Positions 15,742 to 62,874 of a DNA stretch of 64,000 nt are shown one piece after another; position 1 is the first letter of the stretch, and each line of letters starts with the position of its first letter. The position numbers and the translations under genes are program-made. The stretch lies in sequence record OZ196212.1; one strand, 5' to 3'. Below the pieces are notes generated by a model. That model searched no databases, was not told where the DNA came from, and saw nothing but the letters and a program-made list of their open reading frames with translations.

Positions 15742-16719
15742 TTATTTTTCTAGTTCGTAGAAGACTGTATCACCACTCGACATAGAAGTAACTGAGAGAT
15801 TGTAACCCTCTTGTGCTCCAAGCTTGCGCATGATTCTAGTGTATAGAGATTTACGCTTCTCATTACCATCGCCAGTAGCTGTAACAACTTTACGGCAGTT
15901 GTATTGATGAGCAAACGTAATTGCTTCTTGTGCAACTGTAGCGAATACCGTAAATGCGTTTTCAGAATCAGTGATATCGTAAGTCCATTTGCCGTTCACA
16001 GACGCGTGGAAGTGAATCTCGACTGTATCAACCGTTATGTTATCTTCCCAACCAAAGTCAATATCGTCTGAGTCTTCGTGCTGAATACCATGAGGTACTA
16101 GAACGATTTGATACATTTGATTACCGACTTCAAACAACCCGAATATTGGCTTGCGGTCTTTCGTTGGCGTATTGCCTTTCGGGTATGTTACTTTAGCTGC
16201 TCGGTCAAGTGACTCAGTAAGATTGACAGATGAAAGCCAGTCTTGCCAGTTCTTACGACTACCGATTTTTGTAAATGGGATGTCGTCGTGGTCGAGCCAC
16301 TGAATCGAACGGTCGTATGATTGCGACACGTTAAATCCGTTGTAGTCGTCACCGACCCATAGCCATTTGTGATGCCAGATTTGATTGACTTGTCGTGGCT
16401 TCGCGACTTTGCGTTCTGCAACGTCAACGACAATCATCTTACCAGCCGCAGGTTCTTGTACGTGATCGAACTCAGTTGATTCGTAGAAAGCAATCGTAGA
16501 CTTCTTGTAATCGATTCTAACGACGTTCGGGCAGAAAGTCGGGTTCTCAATCGAAAGAAGTGTGCGTGCTTCTGCTACGCGCTCTTTGAACTCTTCAGGT
16601 ACGTAATTGATGTGTAAGTATAATGCACCGCCGATATCTTTACCCACGCCCCATTTGCTTCGTTTAACTGCTGAACCTTTTCGCGTCTTCAGCGTTGCGC
16701 GTTCAAAGATTAGATTCAT
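15742..16719 (-). CDS. Two-domain late hypothetical protein (325 aa), possible internal head protein
   Basis: Long ORF in a late operon; starts MNLIFE; second half shares VFATV...R..LY.R with ORF 60291. Confidence 0.8.
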   Translation of the reverse strand: MNLIFERATLKTRKGSAVKRSKWGVGKDIGGALYLHINYVPEEFKERVAEARTLLSIENPTFCPNVVRIDYKKSTIAFYESTEFDHVQEPAAGKMIVVDVAERKVAKPRQVNQIWHHKWLWVGDDYNGFNVSQSYDRSIQWLDHDDIPFTKIGSRKNWQDWLSSVNLTESLDRAAKVTYPKGNTPTKDRKPIFGLFEVGNQMYQIVLVPHGIQHEDSDDIDFGWEDNITVDTVEIHFHASVNGKWTYDITDSENAFTVFATVAQEAITFAHQYNCRKVVTATGDGNEKRKSLYTRIMRKLGAQEGYNLSVTSMSSGDTVFYELEK

Positions 16720-17315
16720 TATCGTCTCGATTGGTCGTTTATAATGTGACGCATCAAGTTAACTGCGTAATCCGTTTGACCGGTCATAGCAGCCGATGCA
16801 GCTTTATCGACGTAGAACGTACTGTCTTCGATCATGTTCAGATGCTTATAGATCTCTCTGAAGTCGTGACGGTCGTATTCTTTATCAGACCAACGCAAAG
16901 CACCTGCTTTTTTGTCGTCGTCGTGAACACGCTTGTACTCATCGATAACACGAATCATTTCCGAAGCTTGCTTCTTCATCATCATGTTGTCCATCTTCAG
17001 ACGTTTCGCAGCCTTTGCCACTTCGTCTTGAGGACGGTCGTGCTGTATAGCGTCCATTAGAATGTTCATGCTATGCAGAGTATCAATACCTGCCTTTTCC
17101 ATAGCTTGTTGTTGTCGCTGAAGCGTAGAATTGTGCTTACCTAACTCACCCGATGCTGTAGCACTCGCGATAAGACCAGAAAATACACTCCACCAACCGC
17201 CTTTCTTCTGTATACGCTTCTTAACTTCACCTTTCGAACCGCTAGTAAAGTCTTTGAATTGCGCCCACTTACCAGAAAGTGTTGCTTTTTCACGTTCAGT
17301 CAAAAATTCAATCAT
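16719..17315 (-). CDS. Late hypothetical protein (198 aa), possible internal head protein
   Basis: SD AGGGG; TCTAAATA upstream; starts MIEFLTE; helical and charged. Confidence 0.78.
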   Translation of the reverse strand: MIEFLTEREKATLSGKWAQFKDFTSGSKGEVKKRIQKKGGWWSVFSGLIASATASGELGKHNSTLQRQQQAMEKAGIDTLHSMNILMDAIQHDRPQDEVAKAAKRLKMDNMMMKKQASEMIRVIDEYKRVHDDDKKAGALRWSDKEYDRHDFREIYKHLNMIEDSTFYVDKAASAAMTGQTDYAVNLMRHIINDQSRR

Positions 17316-17341
17316 GATTTTAACCCCTTATTTGTTTCTTA

Positions 17342-17349
17342 TATTTAGA
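17342..17349 (-). promoter_or_regulatory. Late-promoter variant TCTAAATA
   Basis: 26 nt upstream of ORF 17315, directly after a terminator. Confidence 0.65.
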
Positions 17350-17357
17350 CACAAACG

Positions 17358-17383
17358 AAAAAAGGTAGCCGAAGCTACCTTTT
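17358..17383 (-). terminator. Terminator with UUCG loop
   Basis: Minus strand AAAAGGTAGC-TTCG-GCTACCTTTTTT. Confidence 0.85.
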
Positions 17384-17396
17384 GGGATATCTGATA

Positions 17397-18026
17397 TTAA
17401 CCGTAGATTTTTTTGATTACGTTGTCGAAGAACTCATGACGTTCATTAACTTTCGCAATGACGTAACGTGCATTCGAACGCAGTGCGTTTTCAACCGCCC
17501 ATTTAGGTGACGATACACTAAAGCCCGATTTTGTGAAGATTTCAAGCAATTCTTCACGTCGAGAAGTCTTAGCAAGACTCATGATGTATCGAACTTGTTT
17601 CTTAACTGGTAGTGCTTTGAACTCGTCGATAGCACACACGCCCATAGCTTGAACAGACTGACCTAGACCGTCGTTTAGAACTTCGGTTAGAATCTTCTCA
17701 AGACCAAGAAGCGGCGAGCGTGTTAACGTGTAGCTGTCAACTTCGATAATTCGCTTCGCTTTCACGTTAGCAGTCAGTGTATATGTACGACGACCGCTTG
17801 CAGTGTCTTGTGAAATACAAGCAAATTGCTCATTTCGCGCTAAAACACCATGCACTTTACGACGTAGAGTTTCGTCAAACTTACCGTCATTCAGTGAATA
17901 CACGATATCGTAGATAGTCAGCTCACGAAGCTCAAGCAGCTCTTCGAGTGCGTTCTGGAATACGTTGCGACGCTTACATACGCCAGTTTCAGCTAGATCT
18001 TTACGCACTTCGATTACATTTTTCAT
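17397..18026 (-). CDS. Early hypothetical protein (209 aa), possible N-terminal winged helix
   Basis: SD GAGAG; LTIYDIV...LRRKVHGVLARN..F...GRRTYTL pattern. Confidence 0.7.
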   Translation of the reverse strand: MKNVIEVRKDLAETGVCKRRNVFQNALEELLELRELTIYDIVYSLNDGKFDETLRRKVHGVLARNEQFACISQDTASGRRTYTLTANVKAKRIIEVDSYTLTRSPLLGLEKILTEVLNDGLGQSVQAMGVCAIDEFKALPVKKQVRYIMSLAKTSRREELLEIFTKSGFSVSSPKWAVENALRSNARYVIAKVNERHEFFDNVIKKIYG

Positions 18027-18049
18027 AATATATTTCTCTCTAAAATCAG

Positions 18050-18346
18050 TTATTGTACTTGTTTGTCACCTAGTCGCACTTCGACTGGTGATTGAATTTC
18101 TTCAAATTCTGTGCCTGTGTAAGCAACATATGCTTCGTGGAAGCTATCTTCACCTGACTCAACGACAATATCAGTTTCATTATTGAACGTGTACATCACA
18201 TGATCGTACAGTTCTGTACCTAAATTGTACATCGGTTCAGTTGTGAAAGGAACACCACATGGAGTCGTCAACAACACTAGTTCTGTGTTGACAGCGACGC
18301 GGTCGATATCAGGGAACTGATTGAATTGCTGTTCGAGTATGTTCAT
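18050..18346 (-). CDS. Early hypothetical protein (98 aa)
   Basis: SD GAGAG; first gene after the early promoter at 18379-18407. Confidence 0.72.
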   Translation of the reverse strand: MNILEQQFNQFPDIDRVAVNTELVLLTTPCGVPFTTEPMYNLGTELYDHVMYTFNNETDIVVESGEDSFHEAYVAYTGTEFEEIQSPVEVRLGDKQVQ

Positions 18347-18378
18347 AGTGTTTCTCTCATTTGTTGTCTACGAGACGA

Positions 18379-18407
18379 ATAATACGGCTATTTTTCATAG
18401 CCGTCAA
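18379..18407 (-). promoter_or_regulatory. Early promoter TTGACG-17-TATTAT with a palindromic spacer
   Basis: ACGGCTAT (18384-18391) / ATAGCCGT (18397-18404) inverted repeat inside the promoter. Confidence 0.75.
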
Positions 18408-18410
18408 CCG

Positions 18411-18896
18411 TTATTTGCGCCATTTTGCAAGTTTTTCATCATATTCGCTGTGTTTCCACAAATCAAACACGATTGTCCCGCTCTGAAACCACCACACAAG
18501 TGAGATTGTATCGTTAAGTTTCGGATCTTTCGGGTTCTTACCCACGTACAGTTCAGTGCTAGGGTGCGAGTGGTAAATCGCTTTCTTCACTTGAAACTTG
18601 TAACCACTCTCTGGCTTACCGATTTCTTTTGGCGGGTGTATGTTGCCTTTGTACGCGACTTCATACACTGTGTTCTTAAACACGATACGACTAGAGTCGA
18701 TATTAAATAGCAAGTTTTGGTACTGCACTGCATTCGGGTGCAAACGCCATTTGTGTTTCGGTGTTGCGTTCAGTAGCTGATCAATCTCTGGCTCTTGTAT
18801 CATCTTGCCTAGATTGTGATTGCCCCACTCTTCGTCAAGCGAGATAGCAAGGTCTACCGTGAACACTTCATTTTCGTATTCGCTAAATTTAAACAT
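18411..18896 (-). CDS. Hypothetical protein (161 aa)
   Basis: ORF with SD GGGG, tightly coupled to the upstream Inh-like gene; starts MFKFSEYENE. Confidence 0.72.
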   Translation of the reverse strand: MFKFSEYENEVFTVDLAISLDEEWGNHNLGKMIQEPEIDQLLNATPKHKWRLHPNAVQYQNLLFNIDSSRIVFKNTVYEVAYKGNIHPPKEIGKPESGYKFQVKKAIYHSHPSTELYVGKNPKDPKLNDTISLVWWFQSGTIVFDLWKHSEYDEKLAKWRK

Positions 18897-18898
18897 GA

Positions 18899-19414
18899 CT
18901 ACCCCAGAACTACGAATGAATTGGATAGATTGTCACGAACAAGCAGTTCGCCGCGCAGTGCAACCCAATATGCGATTGTCTGCAACTCGTGAGTATCGCG
19001 ATTGCCGATTAAGTACGCGTGAATGTCATCGTGCTTAACAACTTGGAACAATTCACCCTCATGGCGATACGAGGGCGTCCATTTCGGCTTGAATTCATCT
19101 TTGATGACGATTTCCACGTCGATTGACTCTACGGGATTGCTGATAACCACCTTTAAATCAACGTCAGTCGCTTCTAGAGTTGTTTCAACGATTGGCGCGT
19201 CTGATTCATCGACTAAATCACATGTCGTCTCTGAGCTGATTACAGACGTGTCTAGATAATCATCAGGAAAGCTAGTGATCTTATCGACGTTAGCCATGAT
19301 CAATCGAATCGCTGCTGATTTGGTTAGCGTCTTGTCGTATTCGATGTCAGTATGTTCAAGCTGAAACTCGATGACTTCGCGCTTCGTCTTGCCTTTCAAG
19401 TATTCTTCGTTCAT
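18899..19414 (-). CDS. inh: Second Inh-like protein
   Basis: N-terminal IEYDKTLTK, acidic middle, C-terminal TIAYWVALRGELLVRDNLSNSFVVL; divergent from uvsW like T4 inh. Confidence 0.68.
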   Translation of the reverse strand: MNEEYLKGKTKREVIEFQLEHTDIEYDKTLTKSAAIRLIMANVDKITSFPDDYLDTSVISSETTCDLVDESDAPIVETTLEATDVDLKVVISNPVESIDVEIVIKDEFKPKWTPSYRHEGELFQVVKHDDIHAYLIGNRDTHELQTIAYWVALRGELLVRDNLSNSFVVLG

Positions 19415-19644
19415 TTTGTTGCCTCATCATATTCAACTGTAATCCAGTTGTTTGTATTACAGTCAAAGAATGTAATTTGTGTAGTGTCAGTATAATTCTT
19501 TCGCATTTCTGCTTTGTTGCTATCAAGACGTGGTAAATACGAAGGGTCTAATGTTGCGTTGTATTCGATACCATGCAGTGTGAATTTATGCAATCCTTTT
19601 GCAAGTGCTTCGATTTTCTTGTCTCGCTTCGAGCGTAATTTCAT
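19411..19644 (-). CDS. Hypothetical protein (77 aa), possible SH3/WYL-like fold
   Basis: NATLDPSYLP...TFFDCNTNNW pattern; ATG 19644. Confidence 0.65.
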   Translation of the reverse strand: MKLRSKRDKKIEALAKGLHKFTLHGIEYNATLDPSYLPRLDSNKAEMRKNYTDTTQITFFDCNTNNWITVEYDEATK

Positions 19645-19658
19645 TGATTTCAAACCTC

Positions 19659-19685
19659 TATAAATACAGTTATAACATATTTAGA
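19659..19685. promoter_or_regulatory. Opposed late promoters: TATAAATA (+, uvsW) and TCTAAATA (-, inh operon)
   Basis: TATAAATA at 19659-19666; minus-strand TCTAAATA at 19678-19685. Confidence 0.7.
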
Positions 19686-19709
19686 CGAAACTCGCATAGA
19701 GAGAAAATC

Positions 19710-21233
19710 ATGAGCGACATTAAAATTGAGTATTTCGACGAAAGTTATGTGCGAATCGTTGCCGAGCCGAGCATAATGCATGAAATGATAGATTACTTTT
19801 CATTTCTAACCGACGGATACAAATTCAACCCTAAATTCAAAATGGGTATTTGGGATGGTAAAATTCGACTAATGACTTATCAAGGTCATTTGCCATACGG
19901 CTTAGTCGGACAAGCGCGTGCATTCGCATCTAACATGATGTACAGCATCGAATCAGATGAACGCCTTGAGCCAAAACAGAAGATTACACGTGAAGACTTC
20001 GACGCGTGGATTGCTTCACTAGACATTTACGCAGGTGACACGAAAATTGAACCATACTGGTATCAGTTAGACTCAGTTTTTCATGGCATCAACAATCAGC
20101 ACGCATTGCTTAATCTTCCAACATCAGCGGGTAAATCATTGATTCAGTCTTTGATCACTCGATGGTTCTTAGAGAACATGGAAGAAGATCAGAAAGTTCT
20201 AGTTATCGTTCCGACGACTGCACTAGTTCAGCAAATGCGCGATGACTTCTTAGACTATCGATTGTTCTCTCACGAAGACATCTATCAGATTCGTGGTGGC
20301 GTTGATAGAGACGCGATTGGTAACGCAAGCATTGTTGTTTCAACGTGGCAATCGGCAGTTAAACAGCCCAAAGAATGGTTCGATCAATTCGGAATGCTGC
20401 TAGTCGATGAGTGTCACTTAGCAACTGGTAAATCGCTTGACGGCATAATCAAGAAGATGACTTACTGTACGTTCAAGCTAGGTCTTACTGGCTCGTTACG
20501 TGACGGTAAAGCAAACGTATTGCAATACGTTGGTTCATTCGGTGACATTTTCAGACCAGTTTCTACAGCACAGCTAATGGAAGAGGGTCAAGTAACAGAC
20601 TTGAAAATCAACTGTCTAATGCTTGAGTACCCACAGCCGCTGCGCGATGAAATGAAAGGTTGTTCGTATCAAGAAGAAATGAAATTCATTCTTGAGAACA
20701 AACACCGAAATCGATACTTGATTAAGCTTGCTTATAATCTGAGTGCGAAGAAAGGCGAAAACACGCTGCTATTGTTCAAGAACATCAAGCATGGTAAGTT
20801 GCTGTACGAAGCGTTGAAAACTATCTACGACCCAGAGAAAGTGTTTTACGTATCTGGTGAGACGAAGACAGATGACCGTACACACGTCAAGAAGATTGCT
20901 GAAGACATCGATGGTGCTATCATCGTCGCGTCGTATGGCGTATTCTCGACTGGTATCTCAATCAAGAAACTGCACAACGTTATCTTTGCACATCCAACGA
21001 AGTCGAAGATCATCAACTTGCAGTCAATCGGTCGTATTCTGCGTAAGCACGGTTCAAAAGTGACTGCGAAGCTGTTCGATATCATCGACAACTTAGCTAT
21101 CAAGCCGAAGCGCAAGAACGCGAAGAAGCCGTATACTCACGTCAACTATACCATGAAGCATGGGATGGCGAGAATCGAGCTGTACAATCAAGAAGAGTTC
21201 AGATACGCAGTGCGTAAAGTTGACTTAGAATAG
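19710..21233 (+). CDS. uvsW: UvsW SF2 DNA helicase
   Basis: WDGKIRL, PTSAGKS, VPTTALVQQM, VDECH, GLTGS, STGISIKKLHN, QSIGRILR; real start ATG 19710 (SD GAGAG). Confidence 0.96.
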   Translation: MSDIKIEYFDESYVRIVAEPSIMHEMIDYFSFLTDGYKFNPKFKMGIWDGKIRLMTYQGHLPYGLVGQARAFASNMMYSIESDERLEPKQKITREDFDAWIASLDIYAGDTKIEPYWYQLDSVFHGINNQHALLNLPTSAGKSLIQSLITRWFLENMEEDQKVLVIVPTTALVQQMRDDFLDYRLFSHEDIYQIRGGVDRDAIGNASIVVSTWQSAVKQPKEWFDQFGMLLVDECHLATGKSLDGIIKKMTYCTFKLGLTGSLRDGKANVLQYVGSFGDIFRPVSTAQLMEEGQVTDLKINCLMLEYPQPLRDEMKGCSYQEEMKFILENKHRNRYLIKLAYNLSAKKGENTLLLFKNIKHGKLLYEALKTIYDPEKVFYVSGETKTDDRTHVKKIAEDIDGAIIVASYGVFSTGISIKKLHNVIFAHPTKSKIINLQSIGRILRKHGSKVTAKLFDIIDNLAIKPKRKNAKKPYTHVNYTMKHGMARIELYNQEEFRYAVRKVDLE

Positions 21234-21239
21234 ACCTCA

Positions 21240-21268
21240 AAAAAGGGAGCATTTAGCTCCCTTTTTTA
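21240..21268. terminator. Bidirectional terminator
   Basis: AAAAAGGGAGC-ATTTA-GCTCCCTTTTTT. Confidence 0.85.
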
Positions 21269-21376
21269 TTAGTCGAATAAACCACCGAGAATCGCGAATA
21301 AAACTTCGAAAAATATCTCAAATGGGTACCACAGCCATCCGAAGAAGCCGCGGTCTTTCTTATTGCGATTGCTCAT
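21269..21376 (-). CDS. Small membrane peptide (35 aa), missing from the ORF track
   Basis: Hand translation MSNRNKKDRGFFGWLWYPFEIFFEVLFAILGGLFD*; fills the gap between uvsY.-2 and the terminator. Confidence 0.6.
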   Translation of the reverse strand: MSNRNKKDRGFFGWLWYPFEIFFEVLFAILGGLFD

Positions 21377-21381
21377 ATCAT

Positions 21382-21552
21382 TTACCCGTTAAGTAATTGC
21401 GTTTCTTGCAATTGCTGTTCACCGTTAGACTCAGTAACCGCCATTTCAGATAAATGCGTTTGACATTGACCTGTATGAACTACACCCTGAGGTGTATTGA
21501 TTGTTACGTCACCATCATTAATCGGTTGTTTGCACACTACACACTGTGTCAT
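21382..21552 (-). CDS. uvsY.-2: UvsY.-2-like protein (56 aa), missing from the ORF track
   Basis: Hand translation MTQCVVCKQPINDGDVTINTPQGVVHTGQCQTHLSEMAVTESNGEQQLQETQLLNG*, matching T4 UvsY.-2 (CVVCK.PI...VH.G.C...ETQLL). Confidence 0.82.
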   Translation of the reverse strand: MTQCVVCKQPINDGDVTINTPQGVVHTGQCQTHLSEMAVTESNGEQQLQETQLLNG

Positions 21553-21718
21553 TGACAAGTTCCTGTTTAATCATTGGTTGAAAGAAGTGAGACGGGTTGC
21601 TATACGCACTACCCGCTAATTCCCACTGGTCGTTAAGCAATGCAGACACTTTTTCATCGAGTGATTCGAGATTGTGATGCATTACTGTTTTGTATTTGTA
21701 TTTAATGTCGAGATTCAT
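21518..21718 (-). CDS. Hypothetical protein (66 aa, DUF1737-like)
   Basis: L.EKVSALLNDQWELAGS...FFQPMIK pattern; coupled to the upstream gene. Confidence 0.6.
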   Translation of the reverse strand: MNLDIKYKYKTVMHHNLESLDEKVSALLNDQWELAGSAYSNPSHFFQPMIKQELVNDTVCSVQTTD

Positions 21719-22132
21719 CTACATACCTATTGCGTTTTTAAACATAGCAGAAGCACGACCCATATCAACCACTTTACCAGTAGCTTGCAGAGCTGTACGA
21801 AGTTGACCCATGAAGCGCATGTGATTTGCACCGTTATCGATAACAAATTCAGTCACGAAAGCTTCTAGTTCGTGTTCGCCCATGCGTTCAGGTAGCAGCA
21901 ACTCAAGTGTTTTGTTTTCAATCACAAGAATGTCAGCATGGTCGCCTTTGGCGTGCTCAAGTGCCAGTTTGTTGTTATCAAGCGCAGCCGAAATCACCTT
22001 GATACATGCTTCGTCAGAATGATCTTGTTTACGGTCAAGTTCTGCGATAATCACAGCCAGGACAGATGCTACTGGTGCGATGCGTTTCTTACGTGCTTTA
22101 AGGCGACGTTCTTTAATTTTGTCAATAATCAT
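21719..22132 (-). CDS. GatB/YqeY-like protein
   Basis: I.ERRLKARK, VLAVIIAELDRK, E.KTLE.LLPERM, MGQL...VDMGRASAMFK pattern of YqeY. Confidence 0.72.
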   Translation of the reverse strand: MIIDKIKERRLKARKKRIAPVASVLAVIIAELDRKQDHSDEACIKVISAALDNNKLALEHAKGDHADILVIENKTLELLLPERMGEHELEAFVTEFVIDNGANHMRFMGQLRTALQATGKVVDMGRASAMFKNAIGM

Positions 22133-22542
22133 ACTATTCCACTCTCAATTTTTCTATTATCAATTACATGTTTAATCGTGAAGCCCATTTGACTAATGCC
22201 TTTCAGTGCTTCTTCGATATACGATAACACATCTTTCATGTGTTGAAAAGTAGCAGTTGCAAGTTGTAGTAACTCATCACCCGCCAATGCGTATTTCATT
22301 TCACTTTTCTCAACGATAAAGTCACAAACTTCATCATCATGTTTGCCGCTGTAATATAACCAACGGTCTTTGCGACACTTTTCCATTTTAAGTTCTGCTT
22401 TAAGCAGCATTTGACGTGCGTCTGCGCGATACCCTAACCATTTAGAGTGCAGTACGGGAATTCGTATTGCTGCTGATTCAAGCATGGTCGTGTCGATTTT
22501 CACGTCTTCGTGATACTCGGCTTTCAATTGTTTTAAGTTCAT
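22129..22542 (-). CDS. uvsY: Recombination mediator UvsY
   Basis: LKQLKAEYHEDVKIDTTMLE, LHSKWL, YYSGK, GFTIKHVIDNRKIESG as in T4 UvsY. Confidence 0.93.
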   Translation of the reverse strand: MNLKQLKAEYHEDVKIDTTMLESAAIRIPVLHSKWLGYRADARQMLLKAELKMEKCRKDRWLYYSGKHDDEVCDFIVEKSEMKYALAGDELLQLATATFQHMKDVLSYIEEALKGISQMGFTIKHVIDNRKIESGIV

Positions 22543-29089: not shown

Positions 29090-29097
29090 TATTTAGA
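29090..29097 (-). promoter_or_regulatory. Late-promoter variant TCTAAATA (gp34)
   Basis: 40 nt upstream of the gp34 ATG. Confidence 0.7.
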
Positions 29098-40863: not shown

Positions 40864-40911
40864 TGCATGAACATCTAAATACAGGCATGTATTAAAAATG
40901 GTGTTCATGCA
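40864..40911 (+). promoter_or_regulatory. Late promoter TCTAAATA inside an RBS-sequestering hairpin
   Basis: TGCATGAACATC (40864-40875) pairs with GGTGTTCATGCA (40900-40911); inner AATACA/TGTATT stem with GGCA loop; TCTAAATA at 40874-40881. Confidence 0.72.
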
Positions 40912-40913
40912 CT

Positions 40914-41759
40914 ATGATAGATGTTTTATTGAGATATAACGTCAAGATACTCAATAGTCGAAAGCTTGTTATCTACACAGATGAGAATCGCTTGAAGCTA
41001 ATTGTGGACTTGGCTAAAGAACTCGATGGCGAATACGTTAAGTGTGACCCGGGCAGTTCAATTGGTTGTATACAGATGGATAAATGCAGAATATACGTCA
41101 AACCAATATCTAATCCTGGCATCGAGAATGAACGCAATTTCTATACTATTGTAAAGCAACATATTGATTCTGGCTGCAAGCGAATTAAGATTGGTCGACG
41201 CGTGATCACGAATGTACTGTCAATTGAAATGACGGGGCATGACACGAAGAACAACAAAAAAGCCGATATGGTGATTCATACCAGTAGCGGTGAAGTTCCG
41301 ATCTCTATCAAAAAATCAAATGCTGAACGTTGGGCAAGCACTGACGTTATTCATGGCGTTGAAGCACGCAAGCTACTAGATCAAATGGTTCACGATGACA
41401 CAGTAAAACTTTCGGATTATTCGGACTGTGGCAAGATCAAGCGATTAAGTCAACCGATTGCTCGTCGTCTCAAAGAGGCTGAGATCAATCAAGTAGTATT
41501 CGGCTCTGATATCTTGAACAATGGCGTGGTTATCGTCAATAGCTTTACATTAGATGATTTTGTTTTCAATAACGATACACTACATATTAGCGGTGAAGTG
41601 CTTTATTCGTCTGCTGACGTTAAAGACACGATTTACCACCCGTATATGATGATTAGAAATGACGCTTGTCGCCGTAGTAAGGCATTGCCTTATGGTGTAC
41701 GAGTCGAAGTTGTATTCGAGTCACGAATTACGAAAAACACGATTGTTTACGAGGAGTAA
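40914..41759 (+). CDS. Putative PD-(D/E)XK-fold endonuclease (281 aa)
   Basis: GIENERNF (helix Glu), KKADMVI (Asp), PISIKK (S-x-K) arrangement. Confidence 0.6.
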   Translation: MIDVLLRYNVKILNSRKLVIYTDENRLKLIVDLAKELDGEYVKCDPGSSIGCIQMDKCRIYVKPISNPGIENERNFYTIVKQHIDSGCKRIKIGRRVITNVLSIEMTGHDTKNNKKADMVIHTSSGEVPISIKKSNAERWASTDVIHGVEARKLLDQMVHDDTVKLSDYSDCGKIKRLSQPIARRLKEAEINQVVFGSDILNNGVVIVNSFTLDDFVFNNDTLHISGEVLYSSADVKDTIYHPYMMIRNDACRRSKALPYGVRVEVVFESRITKNTIVYEE

Positions 41760-55746: not shown

Positions 55747-56462
55747 AGGTTTACTATTGTAGCGACGTTCACAATGACTATCACACTGAGAACGCGCTAG
55801 AACGCATCACGGGCGACAAAACGGCTGTACTGGTAGTAGCGGGCGACATTAACAGCAAAGGGCGCACAGTGCGCGATTTAGAAGCTGTAGCCGACCGTTG
55901 GCGTGCAGTCATCGCAGTACCTGGCAATCACGACTGGTGGGGTTTAGCTCTTCATGAGCGACATAAATTCGATTCAGAGGTTGACAATGTACACGTATTG
56001 CTTGAAAATACAGTTCAGATAGACGACGTTACATTCTGTGGCACTACACTATGGCACGCTATTCCAGATTGGTTTGCGGGTCAGAAGTGGAAAGACACTA
56101 TGAACGACCGCAAGAAGATTCGTGGACGCTTGTATAAGCGACTTTACGGTGAAGAAATTCACTCAACGCATCTTGATTGTGTCAAGTTCATAACAGATTG
56201 TACGAAAATATCAGGTAAGAAAGTGCTGATCACGCATCACGCGATGTCGCCTCAGTCAATTTCAACCGAGTATGCGGGTTCGTCTACTAATATTTTTTAC
56301 TACACGCCATTAGAGCATTTGTTGAAGCATTTCAACTACCACATTCATGGTCATATACATCAAGAAAAAGATTACATGGTTGGTTTGTGTAACGTTGTAT
56401 GTAATCCGCGAGCCTATGGTACTGAAAATGATGAATACGGAATAAGGATTCTGGACATATGA
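55734..56462 (+). CDS. Calcineurin-like metallophosphoesterase
   Basis: SDVH, AGDI, PGNHD, ITHH, IHGHIH motifs. Confidence 0.9.
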   Translation: MADLKVYYCSDVHNDYHTENALERITGDKTAVLVVAGDINSKGRTVRDLEAVADRWRAVIAVPGNHDWWGLALHERHKFDSEVDNVHVLLENTVQIDDVTFCGTTLWHAIPDWFAGQKWKDTMNDRKKIRGRLYKRLYGEEIHSTHLDCVKFITDCTKISGKKVLITHHAMSPQSISTEYAGSSTNIFYYTPLEHLLKHFNYHIHGHIHQEKDYMVGLCNVVCNPRAYGTENDEYGIRILDI

Positions 56463-56668
56463 TGATTTTACTTTACATTCTATTGGGCTTTCTACTAACT
56501 GCACTCGTTGGCGACACTGTGCGCAGTCGTTACGTACTACAAGCAGAATCGATGGGCAAGACGCCACTACCGATGAATTTCTTCATTATTACGTGTGTTT
56601 TGATTCTGCCAATCTGTCTATTGCTGCTTGGCATCAAGAAAGTGCTACAATTCTTCAAATTTATGTAG
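56459..56668 (+). CDS. Membrane protein (69 aa)
   Basis: Two hydrophobic segments; ATGA overlap. Confidence 0.62.
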   Translation: MMILLYILLGFLLTALVGDTVRSRYVLQAESMGKTPLPMNFFIITCVLILPICLLLLGIKKVLQFFKFM

Positions 56669-56676
56669 TTTAAATA
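56669..56676 (+). promoter_or_regulatory. Possible late-promoter variant TTTAAATA
   Basis: One mismatch to TATAAATA, 34 nt before ORF 56711. Confidence 0.45.
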
Positions 56677-56710
56677 CGTGCGTCTAATAATAAAACTTAA
56701 AAGGTAAAAT

Positions 56711-56956
56711 ATGACGCACGATTTTAATATGCTCCTTGAGCAGTACAACCTAGCAAACTTTGAATGCGATGGTGACTTCGAGGACTATTACTGGTCAGTA
56801 GCCGAATGGATCGGTCAAACGATTTTCAGTCACGGTACGCTTCGAAAAACTGACTTTCTTGAACTATTGTGTGATTTGCTTGAAATCACTGAAGATGAAA
56901 TCAACGTCGATGAAGTCGATGATTTCTTGAACGAAGTATATGAACTAAACGAATAG
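56711..56956 (+). CDS. Highly acidic hypothetical protein (81 aa)
   Basis: SD AAGG; 22 D/E against 2 K/R. Confidence 0.75.
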   Translation: MTHDFNMLLEQYNLANFECDGDFEDYYWSVAEWIGQTIFSHGTLRKTDFLELLCDLLEITEDEINVDEVDDFLNEVYELNE

Positions 56957-57023
56957 GTGACATATGAAAAAGTATCATCGTAAGGAGCTATTTCACTGAG
57001 TAATTTAACTTGGAGAAATAGCA

Positions 57024-57536
57024 ATGACAGAACCAAAACTGTACAAAGGCGTGAAGCGCAAAGACCTACCGAAATACGACCGCGAGACAATGGGCTACAA
57101 GTACATTTTCAAGCTTGACGAGGGACCAAACTATCCTGAGTGGGCGCGTGTCTACGTTCAGTACAATAACTGGTGGAATCCCTGCACAACTGGCGTGGGT
57201 TACTATCTAGTCGATGGTGCAAGTAAGCGTTTCAACTTGATTCGCAACGCTGAGTACCTAGCGCGACATAAAGGTGCATACGTGTACCGTTACACTCCGC
57301 TACCAAACGGTGGTGGTTGGAAAAACTCGATTCATTCAGTGCGTGCAAAAGGCGCAATGGCTGAACACAAGCATGACGAAATGTGCAAAGCTGAACTTGA
57401 GGCTGAATACGGTCGCATTGTTCGACACAAACGCGCATACGTTACCAAAATGAATGCAACTGATTGGGATCATCCCCACGGTTACAATTCACAACGTGGC
57501 TGGAAGCGTTCTAAAAAGCGCAAACAGTGGATGTAA
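57024..57536 (+). CDS. Basic hypothetical protein (170 aa)
   Basis: SD GGAG; C-terminal DW...RGWKRSKKRKQW. Confidence 0.75.
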   Translation: MTEPKLYKGVKRKDLPKYDRETMGYKYIFKLDEGPNYPEWARVYVQYNNWWNPCTTGVGYYLVDGASKRFNLIRNAEYLARHKGAYVYRYTPLPNGGGWKNSIHSVRAKGAMAEHKHDEMCKAELEAEYGRIVRHKRAYVTKMNATDWDHPHGYNSQRGWKRSKKRKQWM

Positions 57537-57537
57537 T

Positions 57538-57573
57538 AAAAGGGTTGCATTGTGCAGCCCTTTTTAGTATCAT
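57538..57573 (+). promoter_or_regulatory. Terminator hairpin fused with an early promoter (TTGCAT-17-TATCAT)
   Basis: AAAAGGGTTGCA-TTG-TGCAGCCCTTTTT contains the -35 hexamer. Confidence 0.68.
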
Positions 57574-57597
57574 GAGCATTCAATTCAAGGAGTGCTT

Positions 57598-57810
57598 ATG
57601 TCTATTTTATTAACTGCGCTTGGCGCAACTCTGGGTGTTATCGTGATTGTGTTATCTGCATACCCGTTATGTCGAACACTCGACAACATTTTTGAAGATC
57701 GTTTTAGTAGTGATGCAGCGGCAATGACATGCTTTGTGCTTGCACTTTCTATTTTCATCTTCGCCTTTATGCTAGTCGTTTTGGCTGGTGCAGAATACTT
57801 TCCATTGTGA
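57598..57810 (+). CDS. Membrane protein (70 aa)
   Basis: SD GGAG; two hydrophobic helices. Confidence 0.65.
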   Translation: MSILLTALGATLGVIVIVLSAYPLCRTLDNIFEDRFSSDAAAMTCFVLALSIFIFAFMLVVLAGAEYFPL

Positions 57811-57818
57811 GGAATACT

Positions 57819-58400
57819 ATGAAAAAGACAATTATTTTTGATGTAGATGGCGTACTAATCGATTGGGCAAGCCAACTACCGTTATTCTGCAAGCGATGCG
57901 GTATCGACCCCGTGCTTGCACTGAAACACTTCACAGCTAAAGAGCACGTTGACGTTCGCGACCTATTCGGCATCGAGCAGAAATACATCGCGTTCGAGCT
58001 ACTAGACAAATACAATCTAGAGCACGGTAAGTACATGACTGCTTTCCCAGATGCTGTAGACCACATTCACAAGCTTGCGAAAGAGTACAACTTGATTGCA
58101 CTGACGAAGTTCGGTGATACAACTGAGCACTGGTTAACTCGCAAGTTCAATCTTGAGACGTTCTTCCCTGGGTTGTTCAGTGAGCTGATCACAATTCGCG
58201 GTGACGAATCGAAGATTGGTTACGTTGCTGCAATTCAAGCAGAACATGACGTGGTAGCATTCGTCGATGACCAACTTGAGAACATCGAAGCAATCAAACG
58301 AGCAAATGGTGTGCTGACCGTCCACATGAATCGATATGATGAACGTGCAGACGTTAAACACATGAGCGATATGATGTCTTTCATTGAAAACAATGTTTAA
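57819..58400 (+). CDS. 30.2: HAD-superfamily hydrolase, T4 gp30.2-like
   Basis: MKKTIIFDVDGVLIDWASQLP.F as T4 30.2; ALTKFG, FVDDQLEN; upstream of ligase. Confidence 0.82.
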   Translation: MKKTIIFDVDGVLIDWASQLPLFCKRCGIDPVLALKHFTAKEHVDVRDLFGIEQKYIAFELLDKYNLEHGKYMTAFPDAVDHIHKLAKEYNLIALTKFGDTTEHWLTRKFNLETFFPGLFSELITIRGDESKIGYVAAIQAEHDVVAFVDDQLENIEAIKRANGVLTVHMNRYDERADVKHMSDMMSFIENNV

Positions 58401-58424
58401 CACATAGCGATTCGATTATATAAT
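58394..58424 (+). promoter_or_regulatory. TGTTTAAC-N17-TATAAT promoter (ligase cluster)
   Basis: Box 58394-58401, TATAAT 58419-58424. Confidence 0.68.
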
Positions 58425-58458
58425 AAGCTCCTAACGGGGCTTTTTTTATGGGTGATAA

Positions 58459-58758
58459 ATGATAAAACGAGCATATATTATTCACGCTGACAGCGCGATT
58501 GCTAAACGAGCAGTTGTGTTAGATCGACGTGAGTCAAAGGGTAAGCCGAGATTCTCCAAGAAAGGGGAATGGGAAGCTGAAATGCTTACTGACTGGCAAG
58601 AATGGAACAAAGAAGCATGTGACTACATTGTTCACATCTATGGCGATTTAATCGCAGGTAAACCATTCAACGTCACGATTGTAAACGGCAACGTATATTT
58701 CGAGGAAAATGATGTTTGCTATACTAATGAAAAGCAACCACGAGGTGGCGATTATTGA
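58459..58758 (+). CDS. Hypothetical protein (99 aa)
   Basis: ORF with SD GGGTG. Confidence 0.65.
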   Translation: MIKRAYIIHADSAIAKRAVVLDRRESKGKPRFSKKGEWEAEMLTDWQEWNKEACDYIVHIYGDLIAGKPFNVTIVNGNVYFEENDVCYTNEKQPRGGDY

Positions 58759-58933
58759 TCTCGGAGACGTTACAATGCCCGCATTGTACGTCAAAGAAGA
58801 AGACGCCAACAAAGTTTTGTACAAGAACGACTTGAACACGCACTGCTATGTAGCACCTGTTCGAGCTGATTTTTTTATTTTGGGAAATACTAATGATTCT
58901 GCAAATTCTACACCAACTAGCGGCAACGACTAA
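58709..58933 (+). CDS. Hypothetical protein (74 aa)
   Basis: SD GAGG; overlaps both neighbours. Confidence 0.5.
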   Translation: MMFAILMKSNHEVAIIDLGDVTMPALYVKEEDANKVLYKNDLNTHCYVAPVRADFFILGNTNDSANSTPTSGND

Positions 58934-60227
58934 ACGAACTGAGAAAGAGAAAATCCTCAAAGGCGAAGTAGACAACGAGTTGCTTAAACGCGTATTCGAA
59001 CTCGCGTACTCACCGAATGTTCTGTTCAACATGAAGAAAGTGCCTGAAGTGATGCGTCAAGGCGTTGAGCCGGAAGAATTCGAGCCACTCAACATCGCGT
59101 TAGAACGCGTGTATCAAGCACTAGCAGTCGAACAGCTTCGCGGTAAAGCAGCACAAACGTTCGTTGAACACGTGCTTTACGAACTGAATGAAGACGATGC
59201 AGACGTACTACGTCGCGTTATCTTGAAAGATCTACGCACTGGCTGTACTGGCGGTACTGCGGATAAGGTGTGGAAGAAGCTGATTCCAGAGCAACCGCAA
59301 ATGCTTGCATCGCCATACAAAGAAAAACTAGGCGATGCTATTCTGAAGAACATGGCGTATGCAGAGCTTAAAGCAGATGGCGCACGTTGTTTCGCTCACG
59401 TCGATGCAGATAACAACGTAACGTTTACGTCACGCAACGGCAAACAGTACACTGGCTTGCTGAAGATTGAGCGTGCGATTCAAAGCATGGAATCACAGCG
59501 TTTTGTAATCGATGGTGAACTTGTATACGCACCGAACGGTCTTGACGCAGTTGAAGATCGCTCAACGGGTAACGGCATTGTCAACAAAGCAAGCAAAGGC
59601 ACGATTTCACTTGCAGAACAAGCAGACATTGTTTTCCAAGTATGGGACATCATCCCTGAAGACGTGTATTTCGGTGTTTCGGATGAATTGAACATGCCGT
59701 ATCGTTTACGTAAGCAAGTTCTTGCAGATCGTGCGATGGGTGTCGAGGGCATTGAGCCGATTCCGTGGGATACTGTTCACACGAAAGAAGAAGCAAGCGC
59801 GATCTACAATCGCTATGTAGCGATGGATCTTGAAGGCATCATTCTGAAAAACCCTGAAGCACTGTGGGAAAACAAGCGAAGCAAATCGCTAGTCAAATAC
59901 AAAGAAGTGCATGATGGTGATTTAGAAGTCATCGAAGTGATTGAAGGCGACAAGAAGAACAAAGGCAAGATGGGTGCATTATTGCTACGTTCAGCATGTG
60001 GTCGTTTGATTACGAAAGTTGGTAGTGGCTTTAGTGACAAGCAGCGCGAAGATATCTGGGAGCGTCGTGACGAAGTTATCGGTATGATTGTTGAGATCAA
60101 CTATAACGCGATTACGAAAGCACGCAACAAAGAGACATGGTCGTGTTTCTTACCAATCTTTGTGCAGTTCCGCGACGATAAAGACGTGGCAAACACGCTA
60201 GAAGAAATGAGCGGCTTCAAAGGCTAA
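58893..60227 (+). CDS. gp30: ATP-dependent DNA ligase
   Basis: PQMLA, ELKADGAR (KxDG), SRNG, IDGEL, QVWDII, EGIILK, YKE motifs, C-terminal OB. Confidence 0.96.
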   Translation: MILQILHQLAATTKRTEKEKILKGEVDNELLKRVFELAYSPNVLFNMKKVPEVMRQGVEPEEFEPLNIALERVYQALAVEQLRGKAAQTFVEHVLYELNEDDADVLRRVILKDLRTGCTGGTADKVWKKLIPEQPQMLASPYKEKLGDAILKNMAYAELKADGARCFAHVDADNNVTFTSRNGKQYTGLLKIERAIQSMESQRFVIDGELVYAPNGLDAVEDRSTGNGIVNKASKGTISLAEQADIVFQVWDIIPEDVYFGVSDELNMPYRLRKQVLADRAMGVEGIEPIPWDTVHTKEEASAIYNRYVAMDLEGIILKNPEALWENKRSKSLVKYKEVHDGDLEVIEVIEGDKKNKGKMGALLLRSACGRLITKVGSGFSDKQREDIWERRDEVIGMIVEINYNAITKARNKETWSCFLPIFVQFRDDKDVANTLEEMSGFKG

Positions 60228-60229
60228 AC

Positions 60230-60268
60230 AAAAGGGTTGACTTCGGTCAGCCCTTTTTCATATAAATA
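60230..60268 (+). promoter_or_regulatory. Terminator hairpin (UUCG) followed by late promoter TATAAATA
   Basis: AAAAGGGTTGAC-TTCG-GTCAGCCCTTTTT at 60230-60258; TATAAATA at 60261-60268. Confidence 0.8.
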
Positions 60269-60290
60269 CTTTCATTTAGAGAGAACGAAC

Positions 60291-61151
60291 ATGATTATTT
60301 TCGAGGCATTTTCGCGCCCTGTGCCTTATAAATGGGTCAGACCGAGCGAAATTGAATTCACAGTAAACGGTACGAAGTATCGAGCAACGTACAATATCAC
60401 GTACAGAGACGGCAGCTCACAAATGTACATCGACTTCCAATGGAATGACGGTGGGCAATGGTCGTACAAGCTGAAGAAGGGCGGAGACCCGAAAGACGCA
60501 ATGGCTGTATTTGCGACTGTACTCGCAGCGGGTGAAGAGAAAGCAAATCAAGAGAAGCCGGATTTCATTACGTTTAGCGCGTTCTCAGATGAAGATGATG
60601 CAGACGCACACAAACGATTCAGACTGTACAAACGCATGGCTGATCGCTACGCTAAACAACTTGGCTACACGATGCATGTTGACGGTCGCAATTTCATCTT
60701 GAAGAACAACAACCCATCGACGGTGAGACGTATACCGAATGACGGCATCATGATTGATGACGAACTGACGTACGTTGAAATGCCACGCACGAACGAATTC
60801 ACATGGGCTACAATGTTCGAGTGTACTCGTCCGGGTGATTTTGAAATGGTGCGTTTTAAGAATGGCTTTGCTACAATCAAGCGTCAGACTGAAGATAAAG
60901 TCGAGATCATGGTTAAAGCAGGTGGTCAAACGTATGACAATTTAGATTCGCCAGAAGTGTGGGACAAGTTGAACGGCGAGTTGTTTGTTACAGCGTCATG
61001 GCGCCCAGATGAACCACAACCGATGTCAGAGAAAGCATCATTGCTTGAGAATGGTTGGATGATTTTGACTGAGACATCCACCGTGTACAAAGTAGAAAGT
61101 GTTGCAGACTTCGAAGCGATTTGGGGTTACAAATTAGAGTCTATTAGATAG
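60291..61151 (+). CDS. Late hypothetical protein (286 aa), possible internal head protein
   Basis: SD GAGAG; starts MIIFE; N-half shares VFATV...R..LY.RM with ORF 15742. Confidence 0.78.
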   Translation: MIIFEAFSRPVPYKWVRPSEIEFTVNGTKYRATYNITYRDGSSQMYIDFQWNDGGQWSYKLKKGGDPKDAMAVFATVLAAGEEKANQEKPDFITFSAFSDEDDADAHKRFRLYKRMADRYAKQLGYTMHVDGRNFILKNNNPSTVRRIPNDGIMIDDELTYVEMPRTNEFTWATMFECTRPGDFEMVRFKNGFATIKRQTEDKVEIMVKAGGQTYDNLDSPEVWDKLNGELFVTASWRPDEPQPMSEKASLLENGWMILTETSTVYKVESVADFEAIWGYKLESIR

Positions 61152-61152
61152 T

Positions 61153-61181
61153 AAAAAGGGAGCCAATCGGCTCCCTTTTTT
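61153..61181. terminator. Bidirectional terminator
   Basis: AAAAAGGGAGCC-AATC-GGCTCCCTTTTTT. Confidence 0.88.
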
Positions 61182-62874
61182 ATTGTGCTGCAATTGATTT
61201 GCTGAATTTCTCACGCGTCGTCGCGGGTAGTTCAGGGTTATCTGTACCAAGAAGTAGAATCGCGATGTCTTCAAGTTCAGCCATGCGTTCTTGCTTCATG
61301 TGAACACCAATAACGCTTTCATTGTAAGCGCCTTTGTCGCGCACTGAAAGACGAATGACAGCATGTGAGCCTACGTGATCCATAGTCACAACGTCAGCGT
61401 CAAACACAGTATTACGATTGATCATGAACTCATTTTCACCTTGTTGACCGTTTCTGCCAGGGATGTAAACTGGAAGACCGTCACTTTCGATGATGAATAC
61501 AACTTTCATATTCATAGTACCGAATCCAAGCGTATCAAGCATTTCTTGTTTGCTTGAGTCACGTGATGTCATCACATCAAGCACATTAGCTTCAGCGAAT
61601 TCAACGGCAATCATCGGGTCAGTCGATGCGCTCATGTAAGCAGTCGATGCAAACAAGCCAGTCTTCAGAATGCTTCTAACGACGTTAGACGTACATTCCA
61701 TGCCACGATATAGCAGAGGAGTAGGTTGAATGTTATGACCCATAACGCCAGCCTCTTCGAATGCAGAGTCGATGTCGTCGATAATTTTAGCTGTTTTCTC
61801 TGTGCCTTTACCCGTCAATAGATGCTGATTCACGTTCCAGTATTGTGCGCCAGTATAACGAGCAATAGAGCCTTGAACTTCAGGCGAAACGCCAGACCAT
61901 GTTGGGTCTTGTTGAAGCTGAACTGCTAGTGTGTTGTACTGAGATTCGAATTCACGTGACTTCACAGAAAGCATGTTTCTGACAATCTCGCTAACAGTTC
62001 CCTGATCTTGATGCTTAGTGTTGCGCATAGCAGGTGCCATACGACTAGCAATAGTTTGCAAGTCAATTGGGATATCTAATGTACCAAGTGCGATACGAGC
62101 AACGTCTGCCACTTCAGGCACACTATGATTCGCTGCGCCTTGCAAGCGTTCACGATATACACCGCGAGTTGCCGGGGTTAGAGCAGGCATCACCATTGGC
62201 GTGTTCGGAACACGTTTCGCTGGTTTGTCTTCGATCCATTCAGCTTTCACTTCGTCGTGAAACTCTTCAAATCCCGGTACCATATCAGCCGTAACGATAA
62301 TCGAGCGTGCAGTCGCGATGTCTGGTTCTTTAGACATTTGAGCAGCTAGAATATTGATAGTCTTTTCTTCAGACTCAAGTAGCTTATCGGTATTGTATCC
62401 CGGTTTGTTGATAACGAAGAAGCTGAAATCTTCAGCCATTTCATGATCGCCAACGTTTAGAATCTTAGTTGTTTCACAGCCGTAGCGTAGTTTCTTGAAT
62501 AGCGTTTTGATACGCATATCGAACATCTTGCCACTGCCTTTCTTTTGTACGCGCATTGATACAGCGTTTGCACGAACTTTCAGCATGAATTCTTGAACAA
62601 GTTTAACCAACGTTTCTTGGAACTTTTGTTGATCACCCATATCACGAATAGTTAATCCGCCTTTTTTACCGCGCATTGCAGTAACAGTACAGAACCAAGC
62701 GCGTTTAGTACGGTCGCCTAGCCCCGATTTTGTTTTACTTGTAAACGTGACAACGACATCTTTGGTCTCACCAGCCATATCGATGACAAAGTAACGATTG
62801 ACTTTGGTCGAGCGAGCCGGGTAGTAGTTATAAGTTGAAGTTGCTGTCTCATTTAATTCTTGAAATCCAATCAT
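61180..62874 (-). CDS. alt: Alt-like ADP-ribosyltransferase
   Basis: C-terminal VIP2-type ART: YTGAQYWNVN..L, LYRG (Arg), YMSAS (S-x-S), ENE (ExE); N-terminus aligns by eye with T4 Alt. Confidence 0.85.
   Translation of the reverse strand: MIGFQELNETATSTYNYYPARSTKVNRYFVIDMAGETKDVVVTFTSKTKSGLGDRTKRAWFCTVTAMRGKKGGLTIRDMGDQQKFQETLVKLVQEFMLKVRANAVSMRVQKKGSGKMFDMRIKTLFKKLRYGCETTKILNVGDHEMAEDFSFFVINKPGYNTDKLLESEEKTINILAAQMSKEPDIATARSIIVTADMVPGFEEFHDEVKAEWIEDKPAKRVPNTPMVMPALTPATRGVYRERLQGAANHSVPEVADVARIALGTLDIPIDLQTIASRMAPAMRNTKHQDQGTVSEIVRNMLSVKSREFESQYNTLAVQLQQDPTWSGVSPEVQGSIARYTGAQYWNVNQHLLTGKGTEKTAKIIDDIDSAFEEAGVMGHNIQPTPLLYRGMECTSNVVRSILKTGLFASTAYMSASTDPMIAVEFAEANVLDVMTSRDSSKQEMLDTLGFGTMNMKVVFIIESDGLPVYIPGRNGQQGENEFMINRNTVFDADVVTMDHVGSHAVIRLSVRDKGAYNESVIGVHMKQERMAELEDIAILLLGTDNPELPATTREKFSKSIAAQ

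Follow-up and report, generated by a model that had tools for sequence, protein, structure and literature searches.

Candidate Alt-like and internal-protein-like head proteins encoded in a 64-kb region of the KVP40-like Vibrio phage D527

INTRODUCTION

Do phages related to KVP40 load their heads with proteins that enter the host together with the DNA? The question is raised by a myovirus of the KVP40-like T4 type, Vibrio phage D527, which came from mixed seawater and oysters. In the first part of its genome, several scattered genes open with a short leader ending in Glu. The stretch considered here, hereafter the window, comprises bases 1-64000 of the 254,106-bp record OZ196212.1. Among the T4-type phages, to our knowledge, the packaged proteins have been characterised in detail for T4 alone; they include a factor against restriction and an enzyme that serves host takeover. 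In T4 the prohead protease gp21 cleaves after L/I-x-E, Alt has a short N-terminal propeptide removed, and the internal proteins (IPs) carry capsid targeting sequences of 10-19 residues, in which residues 4 and 7 serve targeting and residues 8 and 10 serve processing (PMC9026906).

An earlier reading of the window, here called the original prediction, had proposed six genes as one family of late genes with capsid-targeting, protease-cleavable N-termini. All six N-termini are present as quoted, in position and in strand, and each opens an annotated coding sequence of OZ196212.1. The six do not form a single family, as genes 0018, 0021 and 0084 are unrelated to the remaining candidates. The analysis described below suggests instead, with a probability that we would place at roughly 0.55, that the window encodes several internal or ejection proteins of the T4 Alt and IP kind, which would belong to the prohead core and would not derive from one gene family. 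The core set would, on balance, consist of the Alt-like gene 0092 and the relatives of its N-terminal domain, namely 0091, and 0017 together with its operon partner 0018. These candidates are probably new, uncharacterised members of a mechanism already known from T4. Orthologues were compared between D527 and the phages F86, 1.081.O, KVP40, nt-1 and ValKK3. The coordinates of all features are collected in Table 1, and a slash within a peptide marks a proposed cut.

AN ALT HOMOLOGUE AND THE DOMAIN AT ITS N-TERMINUS

The product of gene 0092 matches PF03496 with 25.7 bits (cut-off 23.4) and the "Alt-like" family phrog_802 with E = 1.4e-57, and its translation contains visible YRG, SAS and ENE motifs, of the R-S-E type of Alt and VIP2. 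At its N-terminus L-[NT]-E is invariant at residues 7-9 in six phages, with either E or Q at residue 6. Judged by its sequence, 0092 is a true homologue of Alt, with a conserved N-terminal LxE that would end a predicted propeptide. A sequence search for solved structures returned nothing significant for this protein. The likeness to T4 Alt covers the ADP-ribosyltransferase (ART) domain recognised by both families, the late-type promoter and the short leader ending in [L/I]-x-E, and 0092 adjoins the ligase gene region as alt does in the T4-like coliphage ECML-134. The Alt protein of ECML-134 differs in length, with 686 residues against 564 in D527, and tblastn of D527 Alt against Tequatrovirus gave no match at E <= 1e-5.

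Residues 3-141 of 0091 and residues 165-324 of 0017 form a common domain, which by sequence comparison appears to be Pfam DUF6934. In direct searches with PF22028, for which the cut-off is 27 bits, 0017 scores 17.6 bits and 0091 gives no match; the D527 paralogue 0239 passes at 32.5 bits, as do, at 38-67 bits, nine remote relatives that were detected by the profile of 0091. The N-terminal domain of D527 Alt aligns by hhalign with a broad alignment of 160 DUF6934 domains over 134 columns, with a probability of 94% and E = 1.4e-7. On this evidence 0091 and 0017 appear to share the N-terminal domain of Alt; they are unlike it in having no ART domain. Outside the window, D527 has the DUF6934 paralogues 0132 (562 residues, behind a late TCTAAATA), 0152 (288 residues) and 0239 (236 residues), each with an N-terminal leader that ends in a Glu junction. 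The family is large: searched with the 0091-orthologue profile, 1.84 billion representatives yielded 882 clusters at E <= 0.001. Its domain stands alone, at the N-terminus or internally, in up to five copies per protein, and the longest proteins reach about 1480 residues. Two remote members lie in genomic surroundings that are phage-like and otherwise uninformative, and the only paper found on DUF6934 mentions the domain once, in a bacterial genome report.

The boundary of this domain is strongly constrained. Among 145 retrieved family proteins, 73 of 75 N-terminal copies of the domain and 97 of 103 internal ones start directly after a Glu, with I, L, V, F or M at position Glu-2. Two residues before the Glu, I (44%) and L (40%) prevail in N-terminal copies and L (56%), V (23%) and I (20%) in internal ones. 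The residue following the Glu is A (41%), L (25%) or S (18%) in the former and A (41%), L (26%) or S (16%) in the latter, and F at Glu+2 (71% and 80%), D at Glu+3 (70% and 80%) and P at Glu+5 (66% and 65%) are likewise common to both. Aromatic residues are found at Glu-6 in 40% of N-terminal copies versus 4% of internal ones, and at Glu-3 in 29% versus 5%. Leaders of 10 residues are the commonest (18 proteins), followed by those of 9 and 5 residues (11 proteins each). In a 10-residue leader, Glu-6 and Glu-3 fall on residues 4 and 7, the targeting positions of T4 IPIII, and Glu-2 and Glu fall on the processing positions 8 and 10. The N-termini of such relatives, for example MKTFQEFFTE/AF and MKSFKEFITE/LF, are close to those of the ECML-134 internal virion proteins (MKTYQEFITE/AA, MKTYKEFIAE/AS and MKTYQEFIAE/AA), and no DUF6934 was found in the bodies of these T4-type IPs when they were tested for it.

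CONSERVED LEADERS OF THE PROPOSED CORE SET

The first five residues of 0091 are essentially invariant in 10 orthologues whose bodies are 41-75% identical. In most of these the leader is followed by an indel-rich linker and then by a second L-x-E before A or S, while D527 and two close relatives are without the linker and run directly into IFE5/A. The AlphaFold model of 0091 has two domains with a mean predicted local distance difference test (pLDDT) score of 86; residues 1-6 fall below 50 and the first strand begins at residue 13. Neither Foldseek against the PDB (best E 0.012) nor a sequence search of solved structures revealed a significant relative. Among predicted viral structures, Foldseek returned Alt/ART proteins of other T4-like phages with E = 2e-6 to 1.5e-3, including the Alt of phiAS5 (1.5e-4), an ART of HY03 (1e-4) and a 681-residue Shigella phage protein (2e-6), together with proteins that contain zeta-toxin, ParB/sulfiredoxin and deaminase domains. 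The published Atu_ph07 proteome could not be mapped onto these matches.

In 0017, whose start overlaps the stop of 0018, the leader is conserved (MIIFE in 1.081.O) but the following 30 residues are conserved likewise. The internal junction of 0017, VNL[TS]E followed by [SA][LF]D, is kept in all orthologues. The 1.081.O orthologue has only 170 residues and ends two residues past the junction Glu, consisting of the N-domain alone, and the two halves of 0017 are therefore separable modules. Remote homologues of this N-domain have leaders of varied length and sequence, each with [LIM]xE upstream of the conserved core. A match of the N-domain to a Dnd-associated methyltransferase family of NCBIfam reached 15.6 bits where the cut-off is 150 and was not used; the NCBIfam search of the candidates gave only matches far below threshold.

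Gene 0018 has its leader, MIEFLTE, invariant in nine homologues, beside variable residues 8-16. Its AlphaFold model has a pLDDT of 70.7, with residues 1-14 below 50 and therefore disordered, and in both this model and that of 0091 (residues 1-6) the L/I-x-E site is predicted to be accessible within a flexible segment. Foldseek among viral structures found the orthologue only, a sequence search of solved structures gave nothing significant, and 0018 has no relatives outside the KVP40-like clade. The leaders of 0091, 0018 and 0017 contain synonymous codon changes while their residues stay fixed, which argues for selection on the protein.

OTHER CANDIDATES AND THE STATISTICS OF THE LEADER MOTIF

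The loose motif [LI]xE is non-specific. Of the 94 window genes, 22 have it among their first 14 residues, gp32, gp33, gp41, gp59 and nrdG being examples, and its internal frequency is 1.2% per position. Restricted to a Glu at residues 5-7, it marks nine window genes, namely gp68, gp21, gp22, gp23, 0017, 0018, 0020, 0091 and gp59, and genome-wide it is found in 7 of 28 late-promoter-proximal genes, defined as starting 10-55 nucleotides downstream of a late-type box, compared with 18 of 403 others (Fisher p = 5e-4). Gene starts outside the window are calls made for this analysis, a procedure that reproduces the annotation exactly in 85% of the genes of the window.

For the longer leaders, a 10-residue matrix was built from 16 remote DUF6934-family leaders and all 431 N-termini of D527 were scored with it. 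Gene 0384 ranks first, 0021 third and the Alt-like 0092 sixth, followed at a distance by 0091 (21), 0084 (57), 0018 (125) and 0017 (225). Gene 0384 (record 214912-215160, minus strand) lies outside the window and is the only one to satisfy the full T4-type leader rule, with hydrophobic residues at 4 and 7, L or I at 8 and Glu at 10 (PMC9026906). It encodes 82 residues beginning MKTLQEFLAE/AT, with TCTAAATA 25 nucleotides upstream, and from these features it is likely to be a true IP-type protein of D527. High matrix scores were also obtained for MKKFNEFAKE/L (197 residues, record 107719-108312) and MKKLNTFMEE/L (367 residues, CATAAATA upstream, record 190614-191717).

These scores alter the standing of the candidates. 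The original prediction had likened the leaders to the IP type of about ten residues, a form to which 0021 and Alt come close; those of 0017, 0018 and 0091 have 5-7 residues, are of Alt type and score as background. It had also listed 0021 as a weaker case, when 0021 is in fact the best match in the window to a T4 IP-type leader and the cases presented as strongest belong to the shorter, Alt-type class. The leader of 0021 lies at the 99.99th percentile of the null on the 10-residue matrix, although it has Glu at position 8 without L or I there, and its orthologues keep F4-x-E6-[YH]7 but not E10. From its sequence 0021 is a possible further member of the internal proteins. In 0084 the whole protein is uniformly conserved in the compared phages, and its leader is therefore not singled out; Pfam and PHROG searches gave it no family assignment, and it is probably not a member and is the weakest candidate. 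What stands of the proposed set is thus one true Alt homologue, the DUF6934 pair of 0091 and 0017, and the conserved leader of 0018, with 0084 weak.

Gene 0020 (18050-18346, minus strand; N-terminus MNILE) had been passed over and was considered here as a further candidate. Its Glu is Asp in phage F86, and it stands behind a sigma-70-type early promoter, for which reason it was taken as an early gene and dropped. It is an example of the motif occurring without the proposed role.

PROMOTERS AND TRANSCRIPTION UNITS

The exact late promoter TATAAATA is present in eight copies in the window against 1.8 expected, one of them 22 nucleotides before 0091. A hairpin terminator followed directly by a late box is an arrangement common to 0091 and 0018, and the cassette of hairpin and late box (TATAAATA) also lies upstream of alt in ECML-134. 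There the Alt leader reads MELITE/LFD, and 0091 (MIIFE/AF) and 0018 (MIEFLTE/R) have the same architecture and the same leader type. The CATAAATA before the Alt-like 0092 is, by sequence alone, one mismatch from the T4 late consensus. The TCTAAATA variant is found not only before candidates but also upstream of the genes for the tail tube and gp34, and for Aeh1, a related phage, CTAAATA has been published as the late consensus (PMC1524935). By sequence, late-type boxes head the units of 0091, 0018/0017, 0021 and the Alt-like 0092; 0084 has only a weak TTTAAATA (56669-56676) upstream. An element of about 25 nucleotides upstream of 0084 (56669-56695, plus strand), with a TTAAATA box, is conserved nearly base for base in six phages.

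Outside the candidate units, TCTAAATA lies at 3893-3900 (plus), 29090-29097 (minus) and 40874-40881 (plus); these copies include those of the tube and gp34 genes, and the variant also precedes an uncharacterised gene of 281 residues (40914-41759) within an otherwise early-looking block. Genes 0020/0019 and 0016 stand behind sigma-70-type promoters with TTGACG, a 17-nucleotide spacer and TAtTAT-like hexamers, located at 18407-18379 and 15702-15674, respectively. Late TCTAAATA units and sigma-70-type early units are thus interspersed on one strand in the minus-strand cluster 14463-19644.

PROPOSED ROUTE INTO THE HEAD AND ALTERNATIVE EXPLANATIONS

D527 possesses both a protease and a calibration site for prohead cleavage, in the form of its gp21 gene and the site LNE62/A63 of gp23. 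When aligned, the PDB chains of mature T4 gp23 start at D527 residue 63/64, which places the predicted cut at LNE62/A63 and bears out the site that the original prediction had proposed. In the mechanism envisaged here, the core-set genes would be transcribed from late promoters, and the short hydrophobic N-terminal leader, possibly aided by the DUF6934 domain, would load each protein into the scaffolding core of the assembling prohead. The S77 protease gp21 would next cleave after the Glu of [L/I]-x-E, with an additional cut in 0017 probably made at the internal junction before the DUF6934 domain, and the mature proteins would remain in the head and exit with the DNA at infection. Taking together the sequences, late-type promoters, protease gene, Alt homology, shared domain, and the conserved leaders with their predicted disorder, we infer packaging, cleavage, injection and an effect on the host that may include an anti-defence role.

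Several results weigh against such a route. Literature searches found no virion proteome of any KVP40-like phage, and family and structure searches assigned no effector activity to 0017, 0018, 0021, 0084 or the C-domain of 0091. An hhalign comparison of the Alt N-terminus (six close sequences) with the 0091 orthologue alignment was negative (probability 0.2%); with a hidden Markov model (HMM) of 160 family domains, D527 Alt is the sixth and last match in the proteome, colinear from residue 5 but marginal at E = 0.024; and the Alt of T4-type phages matches DUF6934 in sequence at the junction only, its N-domain being otherwise not detectable as DUF6934. With the 10-residue matrix, the 5-7-residue leaders of 0017, 0018 and 0091 do not rise above background, [LI]xE is a common motif that is present at the N-termini of clearly non-virion proteins, replication proteins included, and no late promoter lies near the paralogues 0152 and 0239, which stand in early-looking operons. 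The Glu junction is kept at internal domain copies as well as at N-terminal ones, and may therefore simply be part of the DUF6934 fold. These last observations, with the motif of 0020 behind its early promoter, favour an explanation in which, Alt aside, the Glu motifs are chance or mark the structural start of the fold, and the proteins are late or early cytoplasmic ones, host-modifying or assembly-helping, that are never encapsidated. We consider this unlikely, if the most substantial of the alternatives, in view of leaders that are invariant beside variable neighbours, that are disordered in the models and lie outside the fold, and that are enriched, in their short form, in late genes. The aromatic residues at Glu-6 and Glu-3 are moreover specific to N-terminal copies, and the same type of junction stands at the N-terminal end of T4-type Alt, where T4 Alt reportedly sheds a short propeptide (PMC9026906).

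Processing need not imply injection, and some candidates, chiefly the basic and helical 0018, might be core or scaffold-type proteins comparable to T4 gp67, gp68 and gp22, which would be cut by gp21, degraded and expelled before packaging. Such a fate would suit the isoelectric point (pI) and long helices of 0018, its position near the head module and two inh-like genes, and the similar leaders of D527 gp68 (MKFITE) and gp21 (MELLIE), and the T4 core proteins are indeed cut to fragments that exit the head (PMC9026906). It seems quite improbable nonetheless, as 0018 has no detectable similarity to scaffold families and is limited to the KVP40-like clade, when T4-type phages in general have their core scaffold proteins conserved, and 0091 and 0017, which are globular and have two domains, do not resemble scaffold proteins. 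The conserved N-termini could also reflect a constraint on translation initiation at the nucleotide level, with A/T-rich early codons in place of a protein signal, and the leaders are in fact A/T-rich and directly follow strong ribosome-binding sites. The third-position synonymous changes within leaders whose residues are fixed led us to reject this explanation, and with the Glu junction equally kept far from any start codon we rate it as very remote. An internal or ejected role for the core set thus continues to be the reading that we prefer.

RELATION TO KNOWN PACKAGED PROTEINS AND BROADER IMPLICATIONS

Like the internal proteins of T4, the candidates have a short N-terminal propeptide that would extend to L/I-x-E, ahead of bodies that are diverse and unrelated, and the 10-residue IP leaders of ECML-134 are closely matched by many DUF6934 relatives and by D527 0384. 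They differ from them in that only 0021 and Alt within the window come near the 10-residue form, those of 0017, 0018 and 0091 having 5-7 residues, and in that most are larger and not basic; no PHROG or Pfam IP family matched their bodies in searches for IPI, IPII or IPIII homology. Head-internal proteins are also known from other phages. The ejection (inner-body) proteins of phiKZ and SPN3US are located inside the head, processed after Glu by a gp21-related protease and delivered to the host, and the Dar proteins of phage P1 are head-internal, packaged anti-restriction proteins. The D527 candidates would resemble both in their proposed head-internal status and are unlike them in having no sequence relation and other targeting determinants; none of these families was matched in searches of the candidates. 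A further parallel is offered by the polyvalent and MuF-linked injected proteins of phages (Iyer et al. 2017, PMC5512222). In the present searches DUF6934 occurs in up to five copies in proteins of 800-1480 residues and, by Foldseek, in proteins with zeta-toxin, ParB/sulfiredoxin, deaminase and ART domains, a domain syntax typical of proteins for which delivery with the DNA is predicted. The D527 proteins depart from this pattern: they consist of one or two domains, are not fused to MuF or a portal, and have a recognised enzymatic domain in Alt only.

Packaging of the D527 proteins would mean that vibriophages of the KVP40 type possess a separate and unrelated first-strike set, would open the function of the N-terminal domain of Alt to testing, and would give Pfam DUF6934, with about 900 clusters, a concrete functional hypothesis. 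The leader and Glu junction would in that case provide sequence rules for predicting packaged proteins in metagenomic phage genomes. It is plausible that the D527 candidates extend what phage T4 has taught about capsid-loaded proteins. A more tentative proposal, which we regard as possible but short of probable, is that DUF6934 is the Alt N-terminal domain and constitutes, with leader and Glu junction, a widespread capsid-delivery module of phages with a T4-type protease, D527 having at least six such proteins. One leader per polypeptide would then suffice for entry into the prohead core, a protease site would be present at each domain boundary, multi-copy polyproteins would be cut to units in the head, and diverse cargo (ART, zeta-toxin-like, ParB-like, deaminase and other) would be delivered with the DNA. 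The idea of such a module appears to be previously undescribed.

THE HEAD MODULE AND NEIGHBOURING FEATURES

Table 1. Positions of the candidate genes, their parts and signals, and the head module in the window
Feature	Position	Strand	Details
Portal	4456-6003		
Small core proteins	6018-6677		
gp21 prohead protease	6680-7315	+	Proposed leader-clipping enzyme; N-terminus MELLIE; Pfam Peptidase_S77 (PF03420), E = 3.6e-97, full-length
gp22 scaffold	7348-8190		
gp23	8274-9815		
gp23 propeptide	8274-8459	+	Residues 1-62, ending LNE62/A63; alignment to mature T4 gp23 PDB chains
Hairpin terminator	15719-15738	-	Ends 0018-0017 unit
0017	15742-16719	-	325 residues; N-terminus MNLIFE; family HMM E = 7e-19 for residues 165-324
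0017 DUF6934 domain	15748-16227	-	Residues 165-324
0017 internal junction	16213-16221	-	LTE169/S
0017 N-domain	16213-16701	-	
0017 leader	16702-16719	-	MNLIFE
0018	16719-17315	-	198 residues; pI 9.3; all-helical
0018 leader	17295-17315	-	MIEFLTE
Late-promoter-like TCTAAATA	17342-17349	-	26 nucleotides upstream of 0018 (unit 0018-0017)
Hairpin terminator	17360-17383	-	Directly upstream of 0018 late promoter; 10-bp stem, TTCG loop, T tail; kept in relatives
0021	18411-18896	-	161 residues
0021 leader	18867-18896	-	MFKFSEYENE; F4, Y7, E10
Late-promoter-like TCTAAATA	19678-19685	-	Heads unit 0023, 0022 (inh-like), 0021; kept in 5/6 phages
0084	56711-56956	+	81 residues; pI 4.05 (very acidic); leader MTHDFNMLLE
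Hairpin and late promoter	60234-60268	+	Hairpin 60234-60253 with T run, then exact TATAAATA at 60261-60268; kept in five relatives
0091	60291-61151	+	286 residues; N-terminus MIIFE; family HMM E = 1.5e-33
0091 leader	60291-60305	+	MIIFE
0091 DUF6934 domain	60306-60713	+	
0091 C-domain	60735-61148	+	
0092	61180-62874	-	Alt-like ADP-ribosyltransferase; 564 residues; PF03496 and phrog_802
0092 ART domain	61372-62031	-	Residues 282-501
0092 DUF6934-like N-domain	62395-62847	-	
0092 leader	62848-62874	-	MIGFQELNE
Late-promoter-like CATAAATA	62907-62914	-	32 nucleotides upstream of 0092; kept in 6/6 phages

The minus-strand mosaic of late and early genes at 14463-19644 is followed by a long run of replication and nucleotide-metabolism genes, and ligase, 0091 and the Alt-like 0092 are grouped near the end of the window. 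Two genes annotated as prohead protease inhibitor (inh-like), at 13552-14073 (plus) and 18899-19414 (minus), flank the candidate cluster, the latter being co-transcribed with 0021; neither was matched by a Pfam or NCBIfam model. The vertex protein gp24 (record 64940-65839) is short, with 299 residues, and in all six phages its N-terminal region is free of [LI]xE, in contrast to T4 gp24, which is listed as a gp21 substrate in the annotation of the KVP40 record. Beside gp23, the tRNA nucleotidyltransferase is a single gene in D527 (9859-10968) and is annotated as two adjacent open reading frames in phage nt-1.

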